A stretch of 64,000 nucleotides of DNA from Zygnema circumcarinatum SAG 698-1b. Taxonomy: Eukaryota; Plantae; Zygnematophyceae. The notes under the pieces are model-generated. The model saw only the letters and a list, made by a program, of their open reading frames with translations. It was not told the DNA's origin and ran no database searches. Positions 380-63,880 of the stretch are shown one piece after another (within the stretch, counting starts at the first letter, position 1; each line of letters starts with the position of its first letter). The position numbers and the translations under genes are program-made. The stretch lies in contig CM074804.1 of the NCBI GenBank assembly GCA_037447605.1, positions 4,813,909 to 4,877,908 on the forward strand, written 5' to 3'.

Positions 380-1219
380 ATTCCGATACGTGGGTGGATA
401 ATATCGAAATTTTGAATATATAGTAACAATTAGGGCTTTTCAAATGTCATTATATCCGTAATGGAGTCACTACTGGCACAGGATCTGCAGTGGTGCAATT
501 CCATTCCCGGAAAAAAACGTTATCATTATAAACAATGTCACTATAACGCGAGTACACTGTATTTCAAAAAGGGTCTATTTACACACCTTTTTTGGCCAGA
601 TGCACGGCCTTTCCCGTCAGTCAGACCTTATTTTAGAGGTTTTAGGGTTTTAGTTTTTTTTTCTAAAGGTGTGCATCTAGCCAATAAAGGTGTGGAAATT
701 ACAAATTCAGCCATCCCTAACAGTGAGAGGCCCACTGCCGCGCTTGGTACTGCTGATGGAAGGAGGAAGTCCCGTGTTTGAGAGCCACCGTCAAATAACC
801 AAAAAAAAAAAAAAAAAACCACAAAAAATACGGCATGGCATGGTGTTCGATGGTCTGTATTTTTAGCCCTGGAAAGACCTTTGAAACGTGGCGAACGACG
901 ACACTTAAGAGCAGCTGGCGCTGACAAAAAAGGGTGACAGACTGAGTTCAGAATGTGCCCCGAGTATATGACATTTCGAGCATTAGGGTGGTCAAAACTA
1001 TTGTTCGTATTATGATCGTCGCTTATTTCCAGTTCTACAGTAGCCGCAACTTCTTCAACAAATCTAGCCTACAAGCATATGAAGAATCAGATGAACAATT
1101 CTTCAACTAATAAAAAAAAAAATGATTAACAATCTGCAACACAGTTGTCAAAGCGAAGGTCGATACACAAAAAGTCCAAACAGGCATTTCTCGGCTCCTG
1201 TACAGTTTTGAGTAAAGAT

Positions 1220-4200
1220 TTACACGGGCACAGACACACTGTCCAGGGCTTCTTTCCCCGTAATTTTTGTGTTCAGCTTTGCAAAGAAAGGCTCGTAGTC
1301 TGTTGGCGGCGGCGGATTTTCCAGATCAACAGTGAATGGCTGGCTGAAGGGCACCGTGCTTTTCACCTGCAATAGAAGGAGAGCCGCCCAGTTCGCTGTG
1401 AAAAACCTCAACACGAAAGCAAAAAGCACCTAAAAACCCATAAATCATCGCGATTACCAACAAGCGTCCTGGTCCCCGCAAAACCACACTCTCGCCTACA
1501 CCGGGGCATACACTCAGGCTTTTGAGCTGTTAGAAGGCGGAGGGCCAACCTCAAACGTCTTGTCTGCAGCCGCAGGCGAACGCAGAGCTGCTACACAGAT
1601 GCGTGCGATCTCTTCTCGTCCAATTTTTCCCTGTTCACATCAGAGACAGCAGCAATGCGAGGTGTTCACATGACGACCCCGTATTCAACACACATTTTCT
1701 GGCACCTTCCCTGCGACAGAGAAAGAAGTTGCCTGCCTAGAAACGTAGGAAACAAACTGTAGGGACGACAGCTTTAACTATAGCGTGCCTTCGTCCTGGC
1801 CCACTGTCATCTTGATGTGAGCTGTAGAACTGGCCGCGTCCATATTGCAGCCCAAATACGCCCAGTACTGATATGCAGCAGCACGGGGTTCTAGCAGGTG
1901 CACCATATCCAGCGACCAGAAAGAGGAATATATCAATTTCAAGTAAATCACATCTCTACTTATCGGAGCTGGATTCATTCTGGATCGCATCATTTACAAG
2001 CCAAAATCTCTTCAAATCCTCATCTGGTTCGCTGATTTCGAAAGGGCAGCAAAGACCTTCGGAAAAATTTCAAAGAGTTCGCTCACCTATGAACAGGCCT
2101 ATCCTATTGCAAGAGTTGTACCCCATTCCTTCAAAAAAAAGACTTCCCCTACAAGTGCCCTTGAGTGTGTATTCATATTGGACTGACGGAATCAGACATC
2201 ATAGATATCCCCAGAGTGTGTAAGCCTCCAAGGCCGTACAAGCGCAGTTCGGAATCGTGATAGAATCAGCGGGAAACAGCCCTCCCTCTGAAAATCTTAG
2301 CTTAACAGAAAAAGACTGAAAAGACTATTCAGACTTTGTTCGTGAACCTTTCGAGTCACGCAATACTTCAGCAATGCCTCATTCAGCAAGCAACTGCCGC
2401 GATTTCCCTCCCTAAAGCTGCGAGCTGCAGGGGTTGAAATCGCTTACAGTGATGTTGTCTCCTTGGTCAAACAGAAGTTCTGCACCTGCTGGCTCCTCTG
2501 TGAGAGCGCACGGCCGGATGATTGTGAACGGCACTCCACTCTCCCTTATCACGTCTTCACCCTGCACAGGGAGCACATGCATCTCCATTCAGCAGCTTGA
2601 TTTTTGAGAATCGTCAGATCGAGTTGACATCCAGACACGGTCATGGTATCTAGCCGGCCTCCACAGCATATTGCTGACTGCAGTAGGACGAGCACCATTG
2701 TCTGAAACTAATGGCTATCTTGAACACTCAGCAAATCCTCTACACGTGTGCTCAGTTTCTTGGTAGTATTCCAACTTGACATTGGAGACAGTTCAAGAGC
2801 GCCCATTGTGCGCAAACAAATCCTGCACGGAAGCGCCTCTGCTTCCCATCCTATCCATCTGGTGATTTTTCCAACTGTCGTTGCAACAGCAAACAGCACG
2901 CTGACGACCCACCTTCAGTTTGAAAGTCAAGATGCCTCCCAGCTCTTTATTCATGCGTACAGCGGGAGGCTGCTTGCTCAAATCGAGCCCAGGTCGGTCT
3001 GGCCGAGTGACTCCTGCAGAGCCGACATGGACGAGCCTGGTGACACCATGGATATCAGCAAGAGGTACAGTGAGTATAACAGACAATACCAAGACACAGC
3101 AATCCTCTCAAAAAACGCAGTTTGTTCATTGGAGCGTGTGAACACAGAATCGATCAAGAGTACCACCTGGGTGTAATCGGCTCCGCCAGATATGCCTTGA
3201 TGGATGCCAATGGCAGCTCAAATGAGCCAGGCTCGAATGAAGGATTCAGCTTCCCGTCATATTCGAACTTGCTGTACATTAGCTGTCGTTCACCCCACCG
3301 GGACAATGCTTCAGAATTATAGTTCCCGACAAAGAATCCAAGCATTAAAGCTCACAGTTTTATTTGCTCATGTTGCAAATTTGCAGCGCTAAAATTCTCA
3401 CAATTATATACGAAGGAAACGTGCAAACAATCGCTGAGCTCACTACGTTTTAGAAACGTATGAAAAGCTGCTTAACTGTCCGGTTTAAATTGAAACAAAC
3501 CCACACCTGCAGTGATATAATACTCGACTTGTCTAGAGGAGGAGCATCTGGAACGGTACGAGCGCGGAAAACTGGAACAAAGCTGGAGAAGGGCAGACGG
3601 ACCTGCAAAATCAAGCATTGAGTCACTCTCCGTTAACCACCTGTTCTTTTTGTAGCACACCACAGTACCGCAGGATTCCTGCAGGGCATCCTACACTGTG
3701 CACAATTGTACCGGGAAGAAACTCAGGCAATCACAAGGTGAATAGGCCTCAAAGGAAACTTGATCAATCAAATTCAGATGTAGTGCTCCTTCCTTCTAGT
3801 CTCCACTCAGTAGCCGACCACTCCTGATGACTGACTGCGAATACATGAAGGACAGCTTACTGTTTCCCACTCTCCTGGCCGAGTGTCAAAGCTGGCGGTG
3901 TAGCCGAGGGCGTCCCAATCTGTGGTTGTGCGGACAATGAACTTATAGCGACGTCCGTTTCCCTTGAGTCGCAGCTCGAAGCCCTCGTAGGCAGTCAAGT
4001 CTTCCACGGGCATGAAATTCTGCATGGTATCCACTTTCATTCTTGTGAAAACTAGGCGCTTAATTCTTGATTCTTCGACTTCGAAGTACTTAAGCAGGAT
4101 AAGCCTATTTGACGTAAACAGCTAAAATAAGAGAAAATGGGATGTCAAAAACACGCGCATTGAACTGCTTATGCGTTCATTAAACTGTCTACAAATCTTT

Positions 4201-50332: not shown

Positions 50333-50992
50333 GGTTCTGCCTCCGAGTGATGGCAGCAGAACCACGCCAGTGAGCTTCTCCAAAAGATCGGATCGGCATC
50401 GGATGTTGCAAGGGGTCATCAGATGTCAAGTTATGGGCAATCTGAAGTTACGTAAAAAAACATGTTTTCTAGGATTCAGGACAAACAAAAGTTTCTCATT
50501 GGACAAGAACTTTTTCTTAGCGGAAAGCAGTACGAGAAATGTTTTCGTCTCGGACATCGTCTGCCCGGAAATTGAACGTATCGGGTATCGGGCAGGTGGA
50601 TGAAAATTTCTTACGTAAAACAAATTACAAATAGTCCTAACAACAAGGATGTGGCATTGATTGTGAAAAATAGTCTTTCTCCCCTGAATGACTGCTTTGC
50701 AGGGTAAAGTTTTCTGAGTTTTCGTCACTCAGATTGCCACCCCCCTCTCCCTAGTGGACCCATGGAGTACTCCTATAGGCAATCTTTGGGTTGCTGAAAA
50801 TGCTTGAGGCGGGACATTTGGAATTACTTTTTCTGCTTGGCAAGCAGAACGTATTTCTTTTATCTGAACTTAGTGCATCCATCAACAAAGGACAATATAA
50901 GGAGAGGTTAACGGGCTTCTCCACATTGCTGTGCATTTTGTGCTTATACATTGAGTTGGATCAATCGACAGGACTCTTGCAAGCTCGAAACT

Positions 50993-53900
50993 ATGACACA
51001 TTCCAACAGAATGCCGAGAACCGGCCATGGAATGACTGCCTGTGGCATGCAGGAACTTTTTGACTCTCCTGAAACTCTGAAAAAGAAGGTGAAACAGTTG
51101 GCGGACATTCTGAGGACAAGCAAGTATACGGTGGTATGCTTGTCCATGCACTTTCTTCTCCCCCTGTTTACCCGTGTGCAAACATCTCTGTGGTTTTTGG
51201 TCTCTCGTGTTCCTCTCCTTCGTTGACGGTGGACCTTGTCGCTGAATTTTTTTCTCTTAAAGAGCGTTTGTTCGGTTATTTGCTATGCTAAAGGAAGTAT
51301 GGCGTTGCCGTTGGCTCGTATTGCTGAGCCACTATTCGCAAGCTGCTTCTACGTCCCGCTGGATGGATTAATGTTTCTTGTGCACTTACGAAGAGACTCT
51401 TTCGTGCTAATACTACGCCACTTTGCCGAGAATCAGTCCTGGCGCTTTGTTTCATTTGCATCTAGCAGTCAGAATCAAAGCTGCATCGTTTAATTCTCTG
51501 CATCTTTGAGTTCTCTTTCGTTATCCGTTGGGGTTGCTATTTCTAGCACTGCAATCAAACTGATTTTTTAGGCGGCGGCGCACCTTCCTGCTGTTCTTGA
51601 AACACTGTTCACTGGGCTGCTTTCTGTCAATTTCCAGGTGTACACCGGAGCCGGGATCTCGACCTCTGCCGGAATTCCTGACTATCGAGGACCTTCGGGT
51701 GTGTGGACACTGAAAGCGCATGGCAAGGAAGTGGTTGAGCCTGATTTTGGGCAGGTTCGACACGTTTCCTTGAATTCCCCATTGAGTTTGTGCACATTCT
51801 GATTGTTCAAATTTACTTTTCTGCTCCTAAGGAACGTCGATTTCTTACGGATAACCTCCATACTCTCGTTTGGCGAATTTCACTGTGTTCCCCCTTTGAG
51901 GATTGGAAGGGCCAGACGTTTACTCGGGCTGTCAATCAGGAGTTTCATCCAATGCCTTGATTGTATGTCATTTGGTTCAAAAATGTTGTTTTCTTGATGG
52001 ATGCTGATTTACGTGCTTTTATCTTGGGTGATTACAGCTGCAACCTACAAGTAGCCATTATGCTATAAAACTTCTGATGAGCAAGAAGCTTGCTCGCCAT
52101 ATAGTGTCACAAAACATTGATGGTTTACATCGGCGCAGCGGTATTAGCTCCAATCAAATAAGCGAACTTCATGGGAATTACTGCTTGGAATCATGTCCTT
52201 CTTGTGGAGCAGAGTACTTTCGCCCTTTTGCAGTTTGGGGCGGTCTTACATCGGCTCCAGGATCAACTGCTCTCAGCGCAGCAACAGCATCTAAAGCAGT
52301 CATGAAGCTTCGCAGAGAAAGCCTTGGGACTGACACTCGCAGCAAAAACGGCAACGAGTCTCTCGTGGGCAGTGGAAGACAGAGGGGTCGAAAAAGACGT
52401 TCATCCACCGAATCAGGGACCCTTGAAGTCGCCCCGCTGCCAGCGAAGTTAGACAAAAAGTCAAGGGGAGAAAATGAGGGTGACATTGCTCCTAACGTTG
52501 CCGACACGACTAAAACAGATTACCCCCAACCTCCCGCAGAAGTCATGAGGTTAGATTCAGAACCGAGGGATGAGTTTTCAAAACAAAGTATGATGGGAAT
52601 ATGCATGGCTGACTCTGGTTACTACGGTGCGATCAATCTACCGACCAAAGCAGATTTGTCTTCAAAACAAGGTGTAAGAGCAGATGCACAAGGAAGCAGC
52701 GGATTCAGAGACGACATGCAAGGGAATGAGCAACCAGTGAGGTGTTTTGTGCGGAGGAGGGAACAGCACAATGTATCTACAGAAAGCGCTAAAAGTGGGA
52801 ACAAAATGGTCAATTGGCGCGGAAGGACAAGGTCTGGTCTTGCTCAGCTCTCAAAGAATCCAGAAAACGATGAGGACTTACTTTTGGATATGGGAACGAA
52901 TTCTGAGCAAGTTTGCCAGGAGAATACTGATTGTATCAGTATGAAAAACCAGGTGAACAAGGTTGAACAGGAGAATACTAACTTAAATGATCGATTCACT
53001 CAGCGTAGCGAGAGGTCAAAGGGAAAACCTTCCCAGTTACAGGGGTCAGGGAGCATTACTGGTGCTATATATGCACAAGAGTGTGGTGAGAGATCTAAGT
53101 ACATAGAGCAGCAAACAATGGAAGAGGAGAGGTGTAACGAGCTTGTTGGAGAAGTTTTGCTCGGTACGACATTGGATGCTACTGGCAAGGACTTGGATAA
53201 AGGTGCAGAAGGAAAATTACTGACAGGCCAAGCTTGTAAACATGATGAAATGGTGAAGGAGGAAGATTGCGGGCAGATTGTTACTGAGCAAAGCAGCGTG
53301 GCTTTAGGGAGGGCAAGACGTACACGCGCATGGTCGAGTCAACCTAGCGGTCCAGTGGGCAAGGTAGAGGATGAGGCGTTAGAGATACTGAAAAGCAGGG
53401 CTGGAAATACTGCCAATGCAATGAACATTGAACATGAAGGGATTCGTGACGGTGCTTCTGTCGCCGGCCATGATCATCGAACTGGGCGCAAATGCGTACG
53501 AAAAGGTTGCAATGGAGATCTTGTGGACTCCGTTGTGCTATTTGGGGAGAGTATGCCTCTTAAGGTAAAACCATCTCACGTCAGATGTTGTTTCCTGTGC
53601 TGAATGATGATGGAATGTTGCAAAGACTACACAAACGCGAGTCAGAATCCTCTTGGCTTTCTGTCCTTGTTATGTTAAGTTGTCATTTTTAGTGTGATTT
53701 TTGCAGTGCTTGTAATCTTCTTGATCGGTCCCTCTTCAGTCTGAGTTTGAGTTTGCGCTTGACTACTAGTGCTCCTTGTCATGACCATCTTAGGCTTTGC
53801 AAGGAGCCGAGGAGCATTCAGCGAAAGCCGAGGTAGCGCTCGTCTTGGGCTCCAGTTTGCGAGTAGGACCGGCTTGCGACTTTCCTGGAAATGTCCCTGA

Positions 53901-55327
53901 TCATGGTGGAAAGCTTGTGATTGTCAATTTACAACGTACTCCAATGGATAGGAAGGCTTCATTGGTGAGTCTACATACTCCCCAGGTGTGTCACCTGGAG
54001 TTCGGACAGCTATAGGGTCCAAGTTATTTAGAGTGTCGAACCTGCAGTAGTCAACTTTCTCCATGAGAAAGCTGCAGTGTCCTCTGATCAAGCGTTGAGA
54101 CTGAACTGATGGCATGATGAGGCTATTGAGATAATTCAATAAGGGAAGACCCATAGTTCCTTGTGTATACCAAGCTCTGTCAGACGTTGGAGCTTGCGTT
54201 GCAGAAAGTACAGGAGGTTCGGACAATATATGAAGGAGCTTAGTCGGGACATGAATTTGAGCTTGATCATCCGTCTTTCGACTGCTTTCTTGCAGGTTAT
54301 TCACGGCCGCTGCGATGAAGTTATGGAGCTTCTCCTGGCTGAACTCAATTTGAGTTCCAAAAAACCTCAGAAGTCTACAGGTCCAGACGCCAAGGCGATC
54401 CCTGATGAAGAACTGAATGCTTCAGCTACTGCTGTGCCGAGAGGCAACTCCACTGTTTTCATGGCTCGAGCTGACCCGAAGAGAGACAAAAAGCGCAGTG
54501 GAAGTGAAAGCCGAAACAGTTTGAGGACAGGAAGTTCGGCCAAAGGGCCACTGAAGGTGAAACTGAAGATTGGGTCCAGTTTAAGGAAGGAATTGGAGGG
54601 GCGCTCTTTGGGGACACTGCCTGCCGTAGAGTCTGAACATTTTTTGAATATTTCGTCAGAAGGTGGGAGGCGTCACTCGAGTAGAAGGCGGAGCATGACA
54701 TTTGATGAAGCAGTGGCCTTCTTGGAGCGCAGCCATAAGGATGGATTCTCGCTTGGCAAAGACATCCTCCATGATAGCATGGGACATGTAAGTGACGACT
54801 TGGGAGAGAGGGGAGTGGCTATTGCTAAGACTAAGCAAGCCAATGGCCTTCATGCTTGTGAAATAGAGGAAACCCCCGAAGGAGCTGCTCAATCCTCCAT
54901 CGGACATGGGGATTTTGATTTTGGCCAAGGGGAGACGCCTGCTGACATTACCGTTAGTTGCCCTCAGCGGGAGCAACAGTCTATGGCTAGCAGTTCATTT
55001 TCCAAGTCACCTTCTCAAGGGGGGCAGGAGGAGGGCGAACCGGTAGGGGAGCAGCCCAATCAATGGCGGAGCTACAAGAGGCGGAGGCAGTTACTATGCT
55101 CCGAGAGCCCGGGGCGTCCATTGAGCAGTGTGACTGACAGGACCAACCAGACGCAACTGGATGATGCTGTCCAACAGGAAGGCAGACATGGAGGAGATGA
55201 TGGGTTTCTGGGTTCAGGGGTGTTGACTATCATTCCTGGGTTTTACGAGCCCGCTGATTCGAGATCAAGCGAGCCGAGGATGGGCTCAGCATTGTCGACT
55301 AGGAGAATTGTTTGCTCTGGCGCATAG
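50993..55327 (+). CDS. Class IV NAD+-dependent deacylase, SIRT7-like, with a very long insertion in the Zn-binding module and a long low-complexity C-terminus
   Basis: [44 protein letters not shown] (catalytic His), CPSC (52194-52205) ... [12 protein letters not shown] (53493) [47 protein letters not shown]. Four GT-AG introns. The start codon is uncertain (50993 is the first in-frame ATG). Confidence 0.88.
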
Positions 55328-55819
55328 GGACATTATTTCAATTACACATTTTTTTTCCAGTCTGTAGGAAGTCTGGAGGGCTACATTGCCTTAGTTTTGT
55401 GTGCACTTCGCTCTGATTTCAGGGACATTAACGAAAATTTGAATGGATCGCACAAATCATTCTCAATGCGTCTGTCTTCCCGGCCGCTTTTCTCGCACCT
55501 TTACCGCGGTGAGAATTAGCAGTTCCAACCAGAGGTTCCAAGTATGCCCACGGTGACCCAGCAAGTACGAAATATGCTAGGAAAGCATATTTCCTATTTG
55601 CTGCTTGGGGGCAAACGGCCACTTTTTCAAAAGGGCCGAGACTCGGTCACGGGTCATTATACCTGATTAGAGACACACCTTTTTGCGCCTGCTTCTAGTG
55701 CCGAATTGGCAGGTAGCGTTCTGCTCGTACTTTCTCTCTCTTTAATAGGCCAATTGGGACCGTTGTCACATTGGTTCTACAGATTGCATTTTTCATGCAT
55801 GCACATTTGATAAGAAAGG

Positions 55820-57694: not shown

Positions 57695-60600
57695 ATGATG
57701 GCAGGCGACCAGGGCGACGCAGTCGCTATGGGAGATGATTGGCGAAAGGAAAGTACTGGTGACATAGTCGATCTGAACAGCCAGGGTAAAGGAGGAGCAT
57801 TTGAGCTATCGTCGGGACATAGTGAGTCGGTCTCTGCTAAAGTTGATGGCTGCGATGAGGCACAAGTAGGGAGGGAGGCAGAGAGTAAGGGGGATGAGGT
57901 TGAAGGAGAGAAGGAGGAGACAGGCTTTGAAGCAGAAAGCGTCAAGAGGCGGCTGGCAGAGTGGGGTTCAGTAAGAGCCAATCACGTAGAAATTGAAAGT
58001 AACGCAGGCGCAAAGGAGGAACTTTCTTCACTTGTGAACAGTTCAGTTGAAAGGAACAATTTTGACATGTCAATTCAGGTGAGTGAGGAAGGAGTAAATG
58101 CCAGAGGTGCGGAGGAGGAGCTTAGGTGTACAGGTCAGTCTGAAGGGGCGAAAAGAGCAATGGAGCTACAGATGGAGGAGGCTGGAGGCATTAATGTGAA
58201 GGAGATGAATAGATCCGAGGAGGAACCCGATATTCAGGATGCGATCGTGGTGGACGAGAGCGAGAAGCTCGAGGCGGGAGAGAGAGCGAAGGAGAGACAT
58301 TCTCGTAGTGAGGATTTTCAGAAGACGAGCGCTGAGGCAGAAGTGTGTCAGGAGGTGGTCGACCTCCAAGAGAAAAATCAAGAAGGCAAGCGTGAAGGGG
58401 AGGATATGCAAGCCGAGGACGGGGAGAAAAAAGCGGGAGGTGGGGAGATAAAAAGGGCTGAACTTGATATGGCGAAGTGGGAAGCAGAGCAGGTAAAGGA
58501 GGACTTTCAGCAAAGGCTGAGAGAGAATAGGGACAGTGCTCAAGTGCATGAATCTGAGGAACAGAATGAATCGTATAAAATAAGTTTTGTTGCTAATGAA
58601 ACTCCTCAGCTAAAAGAAGGGCAGGAAAAAGTTGAGAGTGTGTATGAGGAGATAGGCGACAAGGAGATCAAGATCGAGGGAAAGCCTCCTAAGGCAGCTG
58701 TGGAAGAAAAGGAGCAAAACTTGGGTGGGGAAGGAATTGAGCAAAAAATGATTGAGGAGGAGAGATTGGAGACCTCAGAAGAGGAAAGCAATTGTCAGGA
58801 TGAAGGGATAGCCTACAAAGCGAGGAATGGACATGAAAAAGATGAGATGGAGCAGGAGGGAGAGCGTGAACTGGAGCAGAACGGAACCGAGACAGAATTC
58901 GGAAGCAAAGAGACTGAGCTACAATTGAAGGACACGGAAAGTGAGGCGAAAGTGCTTCTCGATCTGCCTGAACTAGAAAAAATAGAAGTTAAGGAAGCCA
59001 CATGGAAATCTGAAGGAGGAGCGGGGGAGAGAGAGGATGGGAAGAGCCTATTGGATGGAAATGCTGAAGCGAAGGAGACAGAGGTAGAGCAGGCGCTGGA
59101 GGGGAGGGAGGCTGAGCAGAAATTGAGAGAAGAAAAGTCAACGTTGATTGCAGGGATGCTGCAGCCTGAAGAGGCAGAGGGTGAAGTTGAGCAAGGAATG
59201 GAGGAACTTAGGAGCGAACGTAAACAAGTATTGGCAGAGGAAGATGAGCAGATGCAGGAGGAAGTTGCCCGATTAGAATATAACGAAGTGGAGCTGAAAG
59301 CGACGAACATGGAAAATGGGGCTAACCTGGTTGACAAGCATGCTCCGCTTGACGTGGAAGCAAGGCTGGAGGATAAAGAGAAAATGCAGAGCGAGATAGA
59401 TATGGCTGTGGGGAGGAGAGACAAAGAGGGAGAGGACGAGAGACAGAAAAAAGCGGAAGACAAAGGAAGGATAGGAATTGAGAAGAGAATACAAGGGGTG
59501 GGGAATCCAGAGGGCAATTTGGAAGAGCAGACTGCTCAGCTACATGTTGAAGACAGGGAGGAAATGCGGGTGATGGCTGAGAAGGAAGATATGTATGAAG
59601 TGCAAGAAGTGCAGGAAAAAGTTGAGAGTGTGTATGAGGATATAGGCGACAAGGAGATTAAGATCGAGGGAAAGCCTCCTAAGGCAGTTGTGGAAGAAAA
59701 GGAGCAAAACATGGGTGCGGAAGGAATTGAGCAAAAAATGATTGAGGAGGAGAGATTGGAGACCTCAGAAGAGGAAAGCAATGGTCAGGAAGAAGGGATA
59801 GCCTATAAAGCTAGAAATGAACATGAAAAAGCTGAGATGGAGCAGGAGGGAGAGCGTGAACTGGAGCAGAACGGAACCGGGACAGAATTCGGAAGCAAAG
59901 AGACTGAGCTACAATTGAAGGACAGAGAAATTGAGGCGAAAGTGCTTCTCGATCAGCCTGAACTGGAAGAAATAGAAGTTAAGGAAGCCACATGGGAATC
60001 TGAAGGAGCGGGAGAGAGAGAGGATGGGAAGAGCCTATTGGATGGAAATGCTGAAGCGAAGGAGGCAGAGGTAGAGCAGGCGCTGGAGGAGAGGGAGGCT
60101 GAGCAGAAATTGAGAGTAGAGAAGCCAACGGTGATTGCAGGGATGCTGCAGCCTGAAGAAGCAGAAGGTGAAGTTGAGCAAGGAATGGAGGAACTTAGGA
60201 GCGAACGTAAACAAGTATTGGCAGAGGAAGATGAGCAGATGAAGAGGCAGGAGGAAGTTGCCCAATTAGGATATAACGAAGTGGAGCTGGAAGCGGCGAA
60301 CATGAAAAATGGAGCTAGCCTGGTTGACAGGCATGCTCCGCTTGACGTGGAAGCAAGGCTGGTAGAGATTTTGGAGGCTAAAGAGAAAATGCAGAGCGAG
60401 GTAGATATGGCTGTGGAGAGGATAGACAGAGAGGGAGAAGACGAGCGACAGAAAAAAGCGGAAGACAAAGGGAGGATAGGAATTGAGAAGAGAATGCAAG
60501 GGGTGGGGAATCCAGAGGGCAATTTGGAAGAGCAGACTGCTCAGCTACATGTTGAAGACAGGGAGGAAATGCGGGTGATGGCTGAGAAGGAAGATATGTA

Positions 60601-63600
60601 TGAAGTGCAGGAAATTGGTGACAATGTAAACGTCACCATAAAGCGAGACGAATCTCAGAACAGCTTCAGGGACACTAACCAAGAATTGGAGGAATCGTTC
60701 ACTGAGCAGGACGTGAAGAAGGAAGAACATGAGAAAGAAGTGGTTAAACGAATTGTTGAGCTTGAGCCGGGAGAGAGAGAGGTAGAGGAGAAGGGGGAGG
60801 AGGAGGTGCAGGAAAAGGGAGTCGACAAGAGATTGCGAGAGCAAATAAGTGAGATGGTAGTATCTGACATGAAGGCTTCACTTGGCCTTAACGAGGAGGT
60901 CGACAAGCAACTAGAAGAGGAACATAATCCTCTCGAAGGAGATGTGGTGCTTGAAGCGATTGTTGAAACACCTGCTCCTGGAGTCGAAGAACTAGGCGAA
61001 AAGGGGAAAATGCTGAAGTCTGAGCTGGAGTTGTGGAAGATCGAATTCACTGACAGTGAAACTCAGATTGAAACAGAGAAAGAAGGTAGGGTAGATGTGA
61101 AGGAGGCTGGAGATATGGAAAAGCTAGCAGATTTGGACCTTGTAATGGAGGAGGACGAATCTGAACAACTAAAAGTGAAAGGTGAGAGAGACTTGGAAAG
61201 GACAGGCTTAATTCCATTCAACCAGAAAGAAGCTGTAAGTGAAGTAGAAATGACAGAAGATGAATTGGCAGAGGGAAAAGCCGAATTTGTTGTATCGCAT
61301 GCGGAGAACGATAAATACAAACAAAGCAAGGAGGTAAGGGAGATGGCCAATTTTCATGGAAGGCAGGAGTTTCAGCCGGAGGTAGATGATGGAGAAGTTA
61401 AAGGGAGAAGCAAAAGTGAAGACCTAGAGTCGGAAGGGCAGGAGATGAGTGAGACATTAGATTTAGAACAGAGAAAGAAACCCGAAGGAGAATTAAGTAT
61501 TGATAACGGTACTGTGACGGCGCAAATAGAGGTTCTTGAAGTGGCAGACAGACTGTGTGAGGATAATTGTGCAGACGCACAGGTTGCGAAGTGTGCTGTT
61601 GATTTTGATGATCAACCGCCACAGCTGGAAGTAAAGGAGAACCATGGTGAGGACAACATGGCCGAGCTTGCTCAGGCTGAAGTCAAGGAGACAGAAGCAG
61701 ATGGTGGGGTTGCGGGAAAAGACACTGAGCAGCCATCACGAACTGATGTACGTGTAGATGAATCGTCTACGGAGTGCCTTTCTTATCAACAGGAAGAAGA
61801 GAAGGATTTCGTAAACGTGATAGGGATTTCAGAGAAAGAACTCGAAGGTGAACCTTCAGAAAGCGAAGAGAAAGGAGGAGCGAGGAATGAAGTGATTGTC
61901 CAAAACGGTCAAGTTGAAGAGCGTGAGAGGGAAGTGAAGCTGACTGGCGCTGAGCTGGTAAATGAGGAGGTAAGTGCTCAGCAACAGTATGCAGGGAAAA
62001 TTCATGTGGTGGAGGTCGTAAGGGAAAACATCTTGATTGAACTGGAGACGGATCGACGCAAGCTTGAGGTGGCGCAAGAGTGGAACGAGATGAGTGTGGC
62101 AGACCAAAATCTTCAGAATGACATCGAGACAACAGAATCGAAGTGGACTCAGGAGGAGAAGCAGGTTCAGCCGGACTTGAGAGATGTCGGACAAGAGGCA
62201 TCCGGACAGCAAGATCAGGTTAAAGTGGTAGAGAAGTTAGGTGATAAAATTCTTGAGCAAGGGAATATAGGTAGAACACAAGATGAGGAGTTTACCAGGA
62301 TAAGGCTTGTAGAGACAGCTGGCAAGGAGTCAGTGGATGAACCAACAAGTCGAGAAGCTATCAAGTTATTGACGGAGGTCGGAAGAGAGGAAGAAGCTGT
62401 TGAGGAAAAGCATCAGCTGGAGTTAAGGACTTCGGAAGCTAACCATTCAATTGAAGAAGCACAGTTTGTAAAAAAATTGACGGATATTGCAGTTGGGAAA
62501 AGAGAGAGCGAGCTTGCAGTGGAGGGGACTGAACCTCAGCAACAACAATCTCCGTTAGTTGAAAACACAGAAGCCACCAATGGTCTAAGTCACCCTGAGT
62601 TGAAGGAAGAGGAACAAGAACTCAAGATAGACGAGAGAACACCTGAGGCTGGTATACAAGAAAATCAGGTGCAGCAGCAGAAAGGTCTTGAGTGGGACGT
62701 CAGTCGTAATGCTGAAGTCATTGGGCTGCAAGCCGGCGAGGTTGAAAGCAGGGAGGTACAAGCAATATATACCGTTCAAAAAGGCAATGTTGACGTTGAG
62801 GGAAAAGCGCAGGACTCTGATTTGCAGGAGACAAAAGTAGAAAGTGTGAAAGACAGTGATGACAACCTCGCAGTTGGAGACAAGATAGCTGATGAAAATA
62901 TCACCCTGGTAGCACTTGGCGACATGACGACGTTTCATGAAGTGCAAGAAAGAAGACCAAAGAATCAGGACCAGGAATTGGTAACGGACCGCACTGATTT
63001 GCCGGGAGGAAGTCGGCAGATGAATGAGGACGCTACATCGTTAGAAGGTTTTCAAAGAATTGCAAAGGTGGGTGAGACTGCGAGTGAGAGGGAGATCATC
63101 GTGTTTGTGGAGACTGAGGAAGGGGAGACTGAGAGGGCAATCAACATAGCGAACGAGCCGCAGAACCATCCAGCAATCAAAGGGTCTGCACTGGGATATG
63201 ACGATGGGGTGGAGAATGCTGCCCTCGCATATGATAGGACGGTGGCAGAGTTTGAGGAGGGCGCAATGGTAAGCGAAAGAGGAGAGGCAGGTGACATCAT
63301 GTCAATGGAAACCGGAGTTGGAATGGCGGGTCGGACAAGAGAGCAAAGTAGTGGTTTGCTAGACGGTGTGGATGGCCATGGAAAGGTCAAACTGGCTAAT
63401 TGTGACAGGAAGGAAGATGCTACTGTCGATATAGAGGCAGTGCAGGCGACAGTTCACATGGAGGGTAGCAGTGAGAAAGGAGTCGCAACTAGGGTTCCGG
63501 AGAGGGAGGCTGAAAAGAGTAATGATGTGGCAGAAGATGACGTGCAGGCTGTAGTCGAGGAGGTCATCAAGATTTTGCAATCGGATGCTGCTGCTGAAGG

Positions 63601-63880
63601 CTACAACGGGCTTCCTAACTGTGTATTGGATGGCAACCAAGACATGCAAACAGATGTCAAGGAATCAAATACGACTCTCGAAAAAAATGCCGACTCCAAA
63701 TCGGCCGTACAACATGGGATTCCGGAACAGATTGGACCGACTTCTGAATCGTCCAAAGCCATTGTTGGAGTAGACAGCCTGAACGACTGGCAAGGAGGAA
63801 GCATTTCAGAACTTAACATGCATTCCATATCAGGTGAAAATCCCAGTGTTTGTAAGCACATGTATGATGCACTTAGTTAA
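57695..63880 (+). CDS. Very large Glu-rich, probably disordered protein (2061 codons in one exon); likely continues by splicing beyond the window
   Basis: Uninterrupted 6.2-kb ORF with strong GAR codon bias. Candidate acceptor GGCAG| at 57686 just upstream of the ATG. Candidate donor T|GTAAGC at 63852, 29 nt before the end of the ORF. No folded domain recognised. Confidence 0.8.
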   Translation: MMAGDQGDAVAMGDDWRKESTGDIVDLNSQGKGGAFELSSGHSESVSAKVDGCDEAQVGREAESKGDEVEGEKEETGFEAESVKRRLAEWGSVRANHVEIESNAGAKEELSSLVNSSVERNNFDMSIQVSEEGVNARGAEEELRCTGQSEGAKRAMELQMEEAGGINVKEMNRSEEEPDIQDAIVVDESEKLEAGERAKERHSRSEDFQKTSAEAEVCQEVVDLQEKNQEGKREGEDMQAEDGEKKAGGGEIKRAELDMAKWEAEQVKEDFQQRLRENRDSAQVHESEEQNESYKISFVANETPQLKEGQEKVESVYEEIGDKEIKIEGKPPKAAVEEKEQNLGGEGIEQKMIEEERLETSEEESNCQDEGIAYKARNGHEKDEMEQEGERELEQNGTETEFGSKETELQLKDTESEAKVLLDLPELEKIEVKEATWKSEGGAGEREDGKSLLDGNAEAKETEVEQALEGREAEQKLREEKSTLIAGMLQPEEAEGEVEQGMEELRSERKQVLAEEDEQMQEEVARLEYNEVELKATNMENGANLVDKHAPLDVEARLEDKEKMQSEIDMAVGRRDKEGEDERQKKAEDKGRIGIEKRIQGVGNPEGNLEEQTAQLHVEDREEMRVMAEKEDMYEVQEVQEKVESVYEDIGDKEIKIEGKPPKAVVEEKEQNMGAEGIEQKMIEEERLETSEEESNGQEEGIAYKARNEHEKAEMEQEGERELEQNGTGTEFGSKETELQLKDREIEAKVLLDQPELEEIEVKEATWESEGAGEREDGKSLLDGNAEAKEAEVEQALEEREAEQKLRVEKPTVIAGMLQPEEAEGEVEQGMEELRSERKQVLAEEDEQMKRQEEVAQLGYNEVELEAANMKNGASLVDRHAPLDVEARLVEILEAKEKMQSEVDMAVERIDREGEDERQKKAEDKGRIGIEKRMQGVGNPEGNLEEQTAQLHVEDREEMRVMAEKEDMYEVQEIGDNVNVTIKRDESQNSFRDTNQELEESFTEQDVKKEEHEKEVVKRIVELEPGEREVEEKGEEEVQEKGVDKRLREQISEMVVSDMKASLGLNEEVDKQLEEEHNPLEGDVVLEAIVETPAPGVEELGEKGKMLKSELELWKIEFTDSETQIETEKEGRVDVKEAGDMEKLADLDLVMEEDESEQLKVKGERDLERTGLIPFNQKEAVSEVEMTEDELAEGKAEFVVSHAENDKYKQSKEVREMANFHGRQEFQPEVDDGEVKGRSKSEDLESEGQEMSETLDLEQRKKPEGELSIDNGTVTAQIEVLEVADRLCEDNCADAQVAKCAVDFDDQPPQLEVKENHGEDNMAELAQAEVKETEADGGVAGKDTEQPSRTDVRVDESSTECLSYQQEEEKDFVNVIGISEKELEGEPSESEEKGGARNEVIVQNGQVEEREREVKLTGAELVNEEVSAQQQYAGKIHVVEVVRENILIELETDRRKLEVAQEWNEMSVADQNLQNDIETTESKWTQEEKQVQPDLRDVGQEASGQQDQVKVVEKLGDKILEQGNIGRTQDEEFTRIRLVETAGKESVDEPTSREAIKLLTEVGREEEAVEEKHQLELRTSEANHSIEEAQFVKKLTDIAVGKRESELAVEGTEPQQQQSPLVENTEATNGLSHPELKEEEQELKIDERTPEAGIQENQVQQQKGLEWDVSRNAEVIGLQAGEVESREVQAIYTVQKGNVDVEGKAQDSDLQETKVESVKDSDDNLAVGDKIADENITLVALGDMTTFHEVQERRPKNQDQELVTDRTDLPGGSRQMNEDATSLEGFQRIAKVGETASEREIIVFVETEEGETERAINIANEPQNHPAIKGSALGYDDGVENAALAYDRTVAEFEEGAMVSERGEAGDIMSMETGVGMAGRTREQSSGLLDGVDGHGKVKLANCDRKEDATVDIEAVQATVHMEGSSEKGVATRVPEREAEKSNDVAEDDVQAVVEEVIKILQSDAAAEGYNGLPNCVLDGNQDMQTDVKESNTTLEKNADSKSAVQHGIPEQIGPTSESSKAIVGVDSLNDWQGGSISELNMHSISGENPSVCKHMYDALS
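58621..60612 (+). repeat. In-frame tandem duplication of about 990 bp (about 330 aa) inside the acidic ORF
   Basis: GCAGGAAAAAGTTGAGAGTGTGTATGAGGA starts at both 58621 and 59611. Both copies end ..GAAGATATGTATGAAGTGCA. All indels between copies are multiples of 3. Confidence 0.95.

Follow-up and report, generated by a model that had tools for sequence, protein, structure and literature searches.

The 64,000-nucleotide window analyzed here (Zygnema circumcarinatum SAG 698-1b, assembly GCA_037447605.1, contig CM074804.1, positions 4,813,909 to 4,877,908 of the forward strand) carries a five-exon class IV sirtuin gene on its plus strand, at approximately 50990–55330. The gene is probably intact and appears to encode a catalytically complete enzyme whose zinc module is opened by a long loop that is very probably translated and predicted to be mostly disordered. 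The two cysteine pairs of the zinc site, CPSC and CVRKGC, lie 429 codons apart within one open frame. The sequence-only reading of this DNA had singled out this spacing, placing the pairs at 52194 and 53493, and its coordinates, motifs and count are correct (a regular-expression search gives 428 residues between the second and third cysteine). Its statement that the pairs normally stand about 20–30 residues apart agrees with the 20–28 residues found in class IV proteins outside the clade described below. Plant sirtuin biology rests on two genes, SRT1 and SRT2. The window gene represents a third plant sirtuin lineage, one retained in streptophyte algae and bryophytes, and is an extreme, new variant of this known but little-studied clade.

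The inserted stretch behaves as coding sequence. No stop codon occurs in its 409 codons, compared with 18 and 31 in the other two plus-strand frames; the probability of such an open run arising by chance is 3e-11 given the base composition, and none of 20,000 shuffled versions was free of stops. The base make-up of the insert (T 20%, purines 61%) is exon-like and close to that of the exon E tail (T 21%, purines 58%), whereas the four introns of the same gene, all of the GT..AG type, contain 28–38% T, with values above 37% (37–38%) in three of them and 28% in the remaining one. A conceivable alternative is that most of the stretch represents an unannotated in-frame intron or exitron, removed from the mRNA to leave a short zinc module. 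The region does contain six GT sites in a reasonable donor context and some AG sites preceded by pyrimidine-rich sequence, and a lenient scan returned two in-frame GT..AG pairs within the insert, joining 52674 or 52737 to 52856 (183 and 120 nt, respectively). Splicing at either pair would take out no more than 61 codons, and both pairs overlap an island (island 2, 52731–52835) whose protein sequence is conserved in a relative, which argues against their being introns.

The relative was identified by searching 1.84 billion (1.84e9) representative proteins with the insert only. The sole match, P0087 (1037 aa, E 1.9e-11), is encoded on a 4227-nt Logan contig (L001) from run SRR8128907 by an uninterrupted open reading frame (ORF) of 1037 codons at 612–3725, which starts at a methionine homologous to that of the window gene. 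BLASTN of L001 against the window yielded five blocks of 77–81% identity, corresponding to exons A and B, both ends of exon C, and exon D. The blocks abut exactly at the predicted splice junctions and all four introns are removed, so the contig represents spliced RNA from a related species. This spliced RNA retains an insert of about 490 residues, longer still than that of the window, with the cysteine pairs 514 residues apart, which makes it very probable that the window insert is translated too, within a single large exon. Exon C is colinear from end to end with P0087 residues 87–681, with 36% identity overall. Synonymous sites between the two sequences are saturated (proportion of synonymous differences, pS, 0.75–0.87) and both frames are nevertheless open, as a non-coding stretch would not have remained in both species; because of the same saturation, no usable ratio of non-synonymous to synonymous rates is available for the whole insert. 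Moreover, homology to the inserts annotated in Chara, liverworts and mosses extends over the first ~60 residues of the insert. Taken with the open frame, the exon-like composition and the position of the candidate splice pairs, this leaves removal of the stretch as an intron very unlikely, and the sequence-only reading was right that no convincing splice pair removes the gap: none of the candidates is credible. Exon C would be easily mis-annotated as containing an intron.

The gene model places the N-terminal part of the catalytic core, the entire insert, the second cysteine pair and the FGE motif on exon C (Table 1). QNIDGLH, the catalytic histidine (SELHGN) and CPSC lie within its first 66 residues, CVRKGC and VLFGE within its last 34; the motif HRTGRKC is present as well, and a 508-aa ORF on the plus strand (52077–53603) holds both cysteine pairs. 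Exon A aligns with L001 627–754 at 77% identity over 51008–51135. The NAD-binding motifs (nicotinamide adenine dinucleotide; GAGIS/GAGxS and GIPDxRG), the catalytic histidine and the four zinc cysteines are all present, in columns that are invariant in both class IV alignments (A1 and A2). The further motifs named in the sequence-only reading were all located: the NAD motif in exon B, VLFGE, the core helix of exon E from 54296, and GRQRGRKRR.

Table 1. Coordinates of the sirtuin gene, its functional sites and the parts of its insert in the window.
Feature	Position	Strand	Description
Exon A	50993–51133	+	start codon and first conserved helix; donor GT at 51134
Exon B	51638–51754	+	NAD-binding motif; 81% identity to L001 752–869, junction at the predicted acceptor
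Exon C	52038–53564	+	1527 nt, 509 codons; acceptor AG 52036–52037, donor GTAAAA at 53565
Catalytic His codon (H of SELHGN)	52170–52172	+	invariant column H45 in class IV alignment A1
First zinc Cys pair, CPSC	52194–52205	+	C53 and C56 invariant in alignment A1
Insert	52236–53462	+	409 codons following FAV, open, purine-rich, predicted disordered
Conserved island 1	52236–52307	+	exon C residues 67–90; near-identical in P0087, recognizable in Chara, liverworts and mosses (AVW-G-L)
Arg-rich cluster	52368–52412	+	includes GRQRGRKRR at 52374–52400
Conserved island 2	52731–52835	+	exon C residues ~232–266; ends NWRGRTRS; BLASTP match to P0087
Conserved islands 3 and 4	53271–53423	+	exon C residues 412–436 and 440–462; conserved relative to P0087
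Second zinc Cys pair, CVRKGC (C-x4-C)	53493–53510	+	from sequence and alignment
Exon D	53794–53964	+	part of the Rossmann fold; 77% identity to L001 2653–2827
Exon E	54296–55327	+	last core helix, low-complexity tail of ~324 residues, stop TAG 55325–55327

P0087 was used as a full-length stand-in for the window protein in structure prediction with AlphaFold2, based on an alignment of 60 sequences. Its core (residues ~20–155 and 650–760), including both halves of the zinc module, was predicted with a local confidence score (predicted local distance difference test, pLDDT) above 90, and on this model the protein would combine a Rossmann fold with a small zinc module. The modelled core superposes on human SIRT6 with Z 33.8 (root-mean-square deviation 1.8 Å over 250 residues, 42% identity) and on nucleosome-bound SIRT7 with Z 24.2 (45% identity). 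The insert and the C-terminal tail both score below 50, that is, they are predicted to be disordered, except for a medium-confidence helix over island 1 (residues 164–185) and a short helix at EALEILK (residues 616–622) in the region of islands 3 and 4. The window insert itself has a grand average of hydropathy of −0.89 and consists of 59% disorder-promoting residues. The sequence-only reading had described the filler as disordered with basic patches; disorder is indeed predicted, and the patches are present.

Breaking up a metal-binding module of 30 residues with 400 more might impair folding, in which case the gene could be a sirtuin in decay or without activity, its zinc module disrupted by insertion. 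We find this scarcely credible. The catalytic and NAD motifs and all four cysteines are intact, all five exons have open frames and canonical splice sites, and the orthologue in the relative is transcribed and intact, with both halves of its zinc module in the confidently predicted core. The proportion of non-synonymous differences (pN) between the two cores is 0.095, against a pS of 0.75. A pseudogene was rejected on account of the intact motifs and frames.

Similarity searches assign the protein to class IV. Exon C matches the Pfam SIR2 family (PF02146) with 35 bits at a cutoff of 24, and P0087 does so with 89.5 bits. Among solved sequences, exon C is closest to human SIRT7 (E 1.9e-14, 56.7 bits), followed by SIRT6 (E 1e-11); P0087 scores 203 (202.9) bits with SIRT7, 177 with SIRT6 and no more than 96 with any other sirtuin. 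The order of the fold matches likewise favors class IV (SIRT6/SIRT7) over classes I–III. The nearest named proteins in word searches come from Chara braunii, Closterium, Marchantia, Riccia, Calypogeia, Ceratodon and Physcomitrium, beyond which the next matches are angiosperm SRT1 proteins at ~40% identity; among proteins of the lengths searched (213–679 and 570–1815 aa), none from a vascular plant belonged to the near group.

Phylogenetic trees were built by three methods from 53 class IV proteins, with exon C as a row of its own and a single animal (insect) SIRT7. All three methods group the window protein with P0087 (support 100/98) inside a streptophyte clade of 11 proteins that includes Chara, Closterium, liverworts and mosses (100/93; 96 in another tree). 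The SRT1/SIRT6 clade (100/99) excludes the window protein. The motifs point the same way: all 16 sampled SRT1/SIRT6 proteins start with MS.(G/N/S)YA and 12 of the 16 carry WED in a motif scan, whereas in the window protein and its clade the N-termini are basic, FGE takes the place of WED, and the MS(L)GYA start is missing. Since trees and motifs agree, the gene is best labelled a class IV sirtuin of a charophyte/bryophyte clade, and on these sequence comparisons it is not SRT1 and only loosely SIRT7-like. The claim of the sequence-only reading that the gene lies outside SRT1/SIRT6, with no MSLGYA start and with FGE in place of WED, is thus borne out by the phylogeny, and the alternative that it is an SRT1 orthologue of a kind that commonly carries such an insert was rejected by tree and motifs.

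Its comparison with SIRT7 fares less well. The higher score (203 versus 177 bits) and identity (45% versus 42%) favor SIRT7 weakly over SIRT6. The sister relationship of the streptophyte clade to the single insect SIRT7 received a support of 64/27, and the data are fitted just as well by a tree constrained to join the clade to SIRT6/SRT1 (approximately unbiased (AU) test, p 0.57); a forced union with green-plant SRT1 alone costs 35 log-likelihood units and is borderline (AU p 0.058). Human SIRT7 (PDB 9gmk), the best-scoring solved sequence, shares with the window protein the FGE motif and, at the C-terminus, a helix of the HGKCDDVMRLLMAEL type. Its long N-terminal three-helix nucleosome-binding domain, which is reported to be limited to insects and most vertebrates (bioRxiv 10.1101/2024.10.10.617549), is absent here: the start methionine stands 19 residues before ELFDSPE, and in-frame stops lie upstream of the start both in the window (at 50909) and in the P0087 transcript (9 nt before the ATG). 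The His-Arg motif that precedes HQTGR in SIRT7 reads His-Asp in the window protein (H-D-H-R-T-G-R-K-C-x4-C), the second cysteine pair is C-x4-C instead of C-x2-C, and the gap between the pairs is about 25 residues in SIRT7. SIRT6 and plant SRT1 have the same fold, with a small zinc module that lacks the helical module of classes I–III, and plant SRT1 resembles the window protein in its C-x4-C second pair and in the long, disordered tail at its C-terminus. In animal SIRT6 the second pair encloses an arginine-anchor loop of 10–11 residues (as in the SIRT6-type proteins of Hydra and a rotifer), compared with a spacer of four in the window protein.

All members of the clade start with a short Arg-rich segment, for example ..GARRRS (window 50993–51050; P0087, P0001, P0002 and P0112). 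Judging by sequence, such a segment might correspond, in minimal form, to the basic N-terminus of SIRT7.

The enlarged gap between the cysteine pairs is found in every member of the clade. The spacing between the second and third cysteine is 20–28 residues in insect SIRT7 and in fungal, protist and green-algal SRT1-type proteins; it rises to 54 in Closterium, 55–56 in mosses, 70 in liverworts and 85 in Chara. Chara braunii CBR_g70742, Marchantia paleacea Mapa_007061, Physcomitrium patens 'SRT1 isoform X1' and Ceratodon KC19_4G144400 belong to this clade and share the basic N-terminus, AVW-G-L, the Arg-rich cluster, C-x4-C and FGE, with a long disordered tail in Chara as well. The shorter inserts begin with AVW-G-L and, except in Closterium, carry an Arg/Lys cluster before (D/N)H.TGR.C; the window GRQRGRKRR corresponds to RRRGRAKGGRKQRQR of Chara. 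These comparisons suggest that an insert of 30–60 extra residues is ancestral to the streptophyte clade and that the window lineage expanded it 5- to 8-fold. The idea of the sequence-only reading that a loop was simply grafted in here thus does not hold. A search for the same insert in other streptophytes, which that reading had called for, recovered shorter versions with spacings of 54–85 and the AVW-G-L start, and no counterpart of islands 2–4.

The position of the loop suggests where it might act. In human SIRT7, H217 and R218 in the zinc-region loop contact the second DNA gyre of the nucleosome, and their mutation shifts activity between H3K36ac and H3K18ac (10.1101/2024.10.10.617549); the alignment places the window insert directly before the equivalents of these residues. 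The zinc domain of SIRT6 docks on the nucleosome acidic patch, with a role for the arginine-anchor loop (PMC10104460). We envisage that the loop leaves and re-enters the zinc-binding module, whose four cysteines could still close the site since the flanking β-strands are intact. It would have started as the ancestral VW-G-L insert, with an Arg-rich cluster in most members, and would have been expanded in this lineage while only a few short islands were kept. It would emerge where the SIRT7 zinc-module loop meets the second gyre, next to the module that SIRT6 uses for nucleosome docking. Because the protein lacks both the N-terminal helices of SIRT7 and the arginine-anchor loop of SIRT6, the loop is a candidate chromatin or nucleic-acid tether: with its Arg-rich linear motifs it might hold the enzyme on nucleosomal DNA, histones or RNA, or tune the choice of lysine, and it may also bear regulatory sites. 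By analogy with the human enzymes, we put forward such tethering or substrate tuning as a tentative proposal.

Several observations weigh against this explanation or narrow it. The charge of the insert is near-balanced and slightly negative (57 Lys and Arg against 61 Asp and Glu, isoelectric point 5.8), and the insert of the Closterium sp. protein P0003 is nearly pure Glu/Asp rather than basic; together these weaken a simple DNA-binding reading. The nuclear localization signal could be supplied elsewhere in the protein, by SYKRRR, which the exon E tail conserves. The insert is for the most part poorly conserved (36% identity, many gaps, no recognizable domain), and much of it may be neutral spacer. 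The transcript evidence consists of one contig from one run of one relative species, and part of the insert may undergo alternative splicing as an exitron.

Neutrality of the bulk therefore deserves to be weighed as an alternative of its own, in which the loop is translated and only the ancestral segment with VW-G-L and the Arg cluster is functional. We rate this as possible, if somewhat doubtful, and as only slightly less probable than the tethering or tuning role. It accords with the low identity, with the difference in length between the window (409 residues) and P0087 (~490), with the predicted disorder and with the like composition of the C-terminal tail of the same protein. No tandem repeat, internal repeat or dispersed second copy of the insert, as DNA or protein, was found within the window, nor any similarity to the C-terminal tail of the gene; Pfam gave no known domain, and a feature search of the ESM Atlas, a language-model resource, gave no usable match. 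(For want of a tandem repeat, second copy or internal repeat, an origin of the insert from a repeat or transposon was rejected.) Neutral bulk is at odds with the four short islands, conserved well above the background of the insert, although their values (pN 0.25 versus pS 0.69) are biased by the islands having been picked by identity. It is further at odds with the distance of three of the islands from the ancestral segment, and with the location of the insert, at what is a nucleosome contact point of the human class IV enzymes.

On a broader and more speculative scenario, which we consider unlikely though worth stating, nucleosome anchoring would have been solved three times in class IV: by the anchor loop of SIRT6, by the N-terminal helices of SIRT7, and by the Arg-bearing loop between the cysteine pairs in streptophytes. 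In the window lineage this loop would have grown to 400–500 residues, with extra motifs recruiting partners or nucleic acids, and the clade would have been lost in vascular plants. The clade in any case places a variable loop, from about 55 to more than 500 residues, with Arg-rich motifs at a nucleosome-reading point, and so offers a natural experiment in the rewiring of nucleosome engagement and lysine choice.

As to novelty, the sequence-only reading had proposed that a streptophyte carries a second class IV sirtuin distinct from SRT1. The non-SRT1 assignment stands; such a sirtuin is already on record, since Physcomitrella has been tabulated with both SIRT6 and SIRT7 (PMC3599600) and clade members have annotations in Chara, Marchantia, Riccia, Calypogeia, Ceratodon and Physcomitrium. 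No description of a zinc-module insert or of its expansion was found in the part of the literature that was covered. The enzyme itself is of a known kind, here in a lineage-specific variant, and algal proteins often carry large disordered insertions in their surface loops.

Some minor observations accompany these results. The tail encoded by exon E aligns weakly with that of P0087, with two shared islands, one of which is SYKRRR and resembles a nuclear localization signal. Starting 2.4 kb downstream of the end of the sirtuin gene, an ORF on the plus strand (57695–63880) runs uninterrupted for 2061 codons; it matches no Pfam family and has no relative of solved structure and no exact record in the gene collection searched. 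The P0003 model from Closterium contains a Pro/Ser-rich stretch between FGE and GSSL that resembles a read-through intron. The Physcomitrium patens protein P0113, listed at NCBI as 'SRT1 isoform X1', groups with the non-SRT1 streptophyte clade and does not have the N-terminus of SRT1, so that its name is probably wrong. A third class IV group, apart from SRT1 and from the clade of the window gene, is formed by P0224 of Chara braunii and P0135 of Klebsormidium nitens, which cluster with early-diverging fungal sequences (100/95); as P0224 lies outside both, Chara has at least two non-SRT1 class IV sirtuins.

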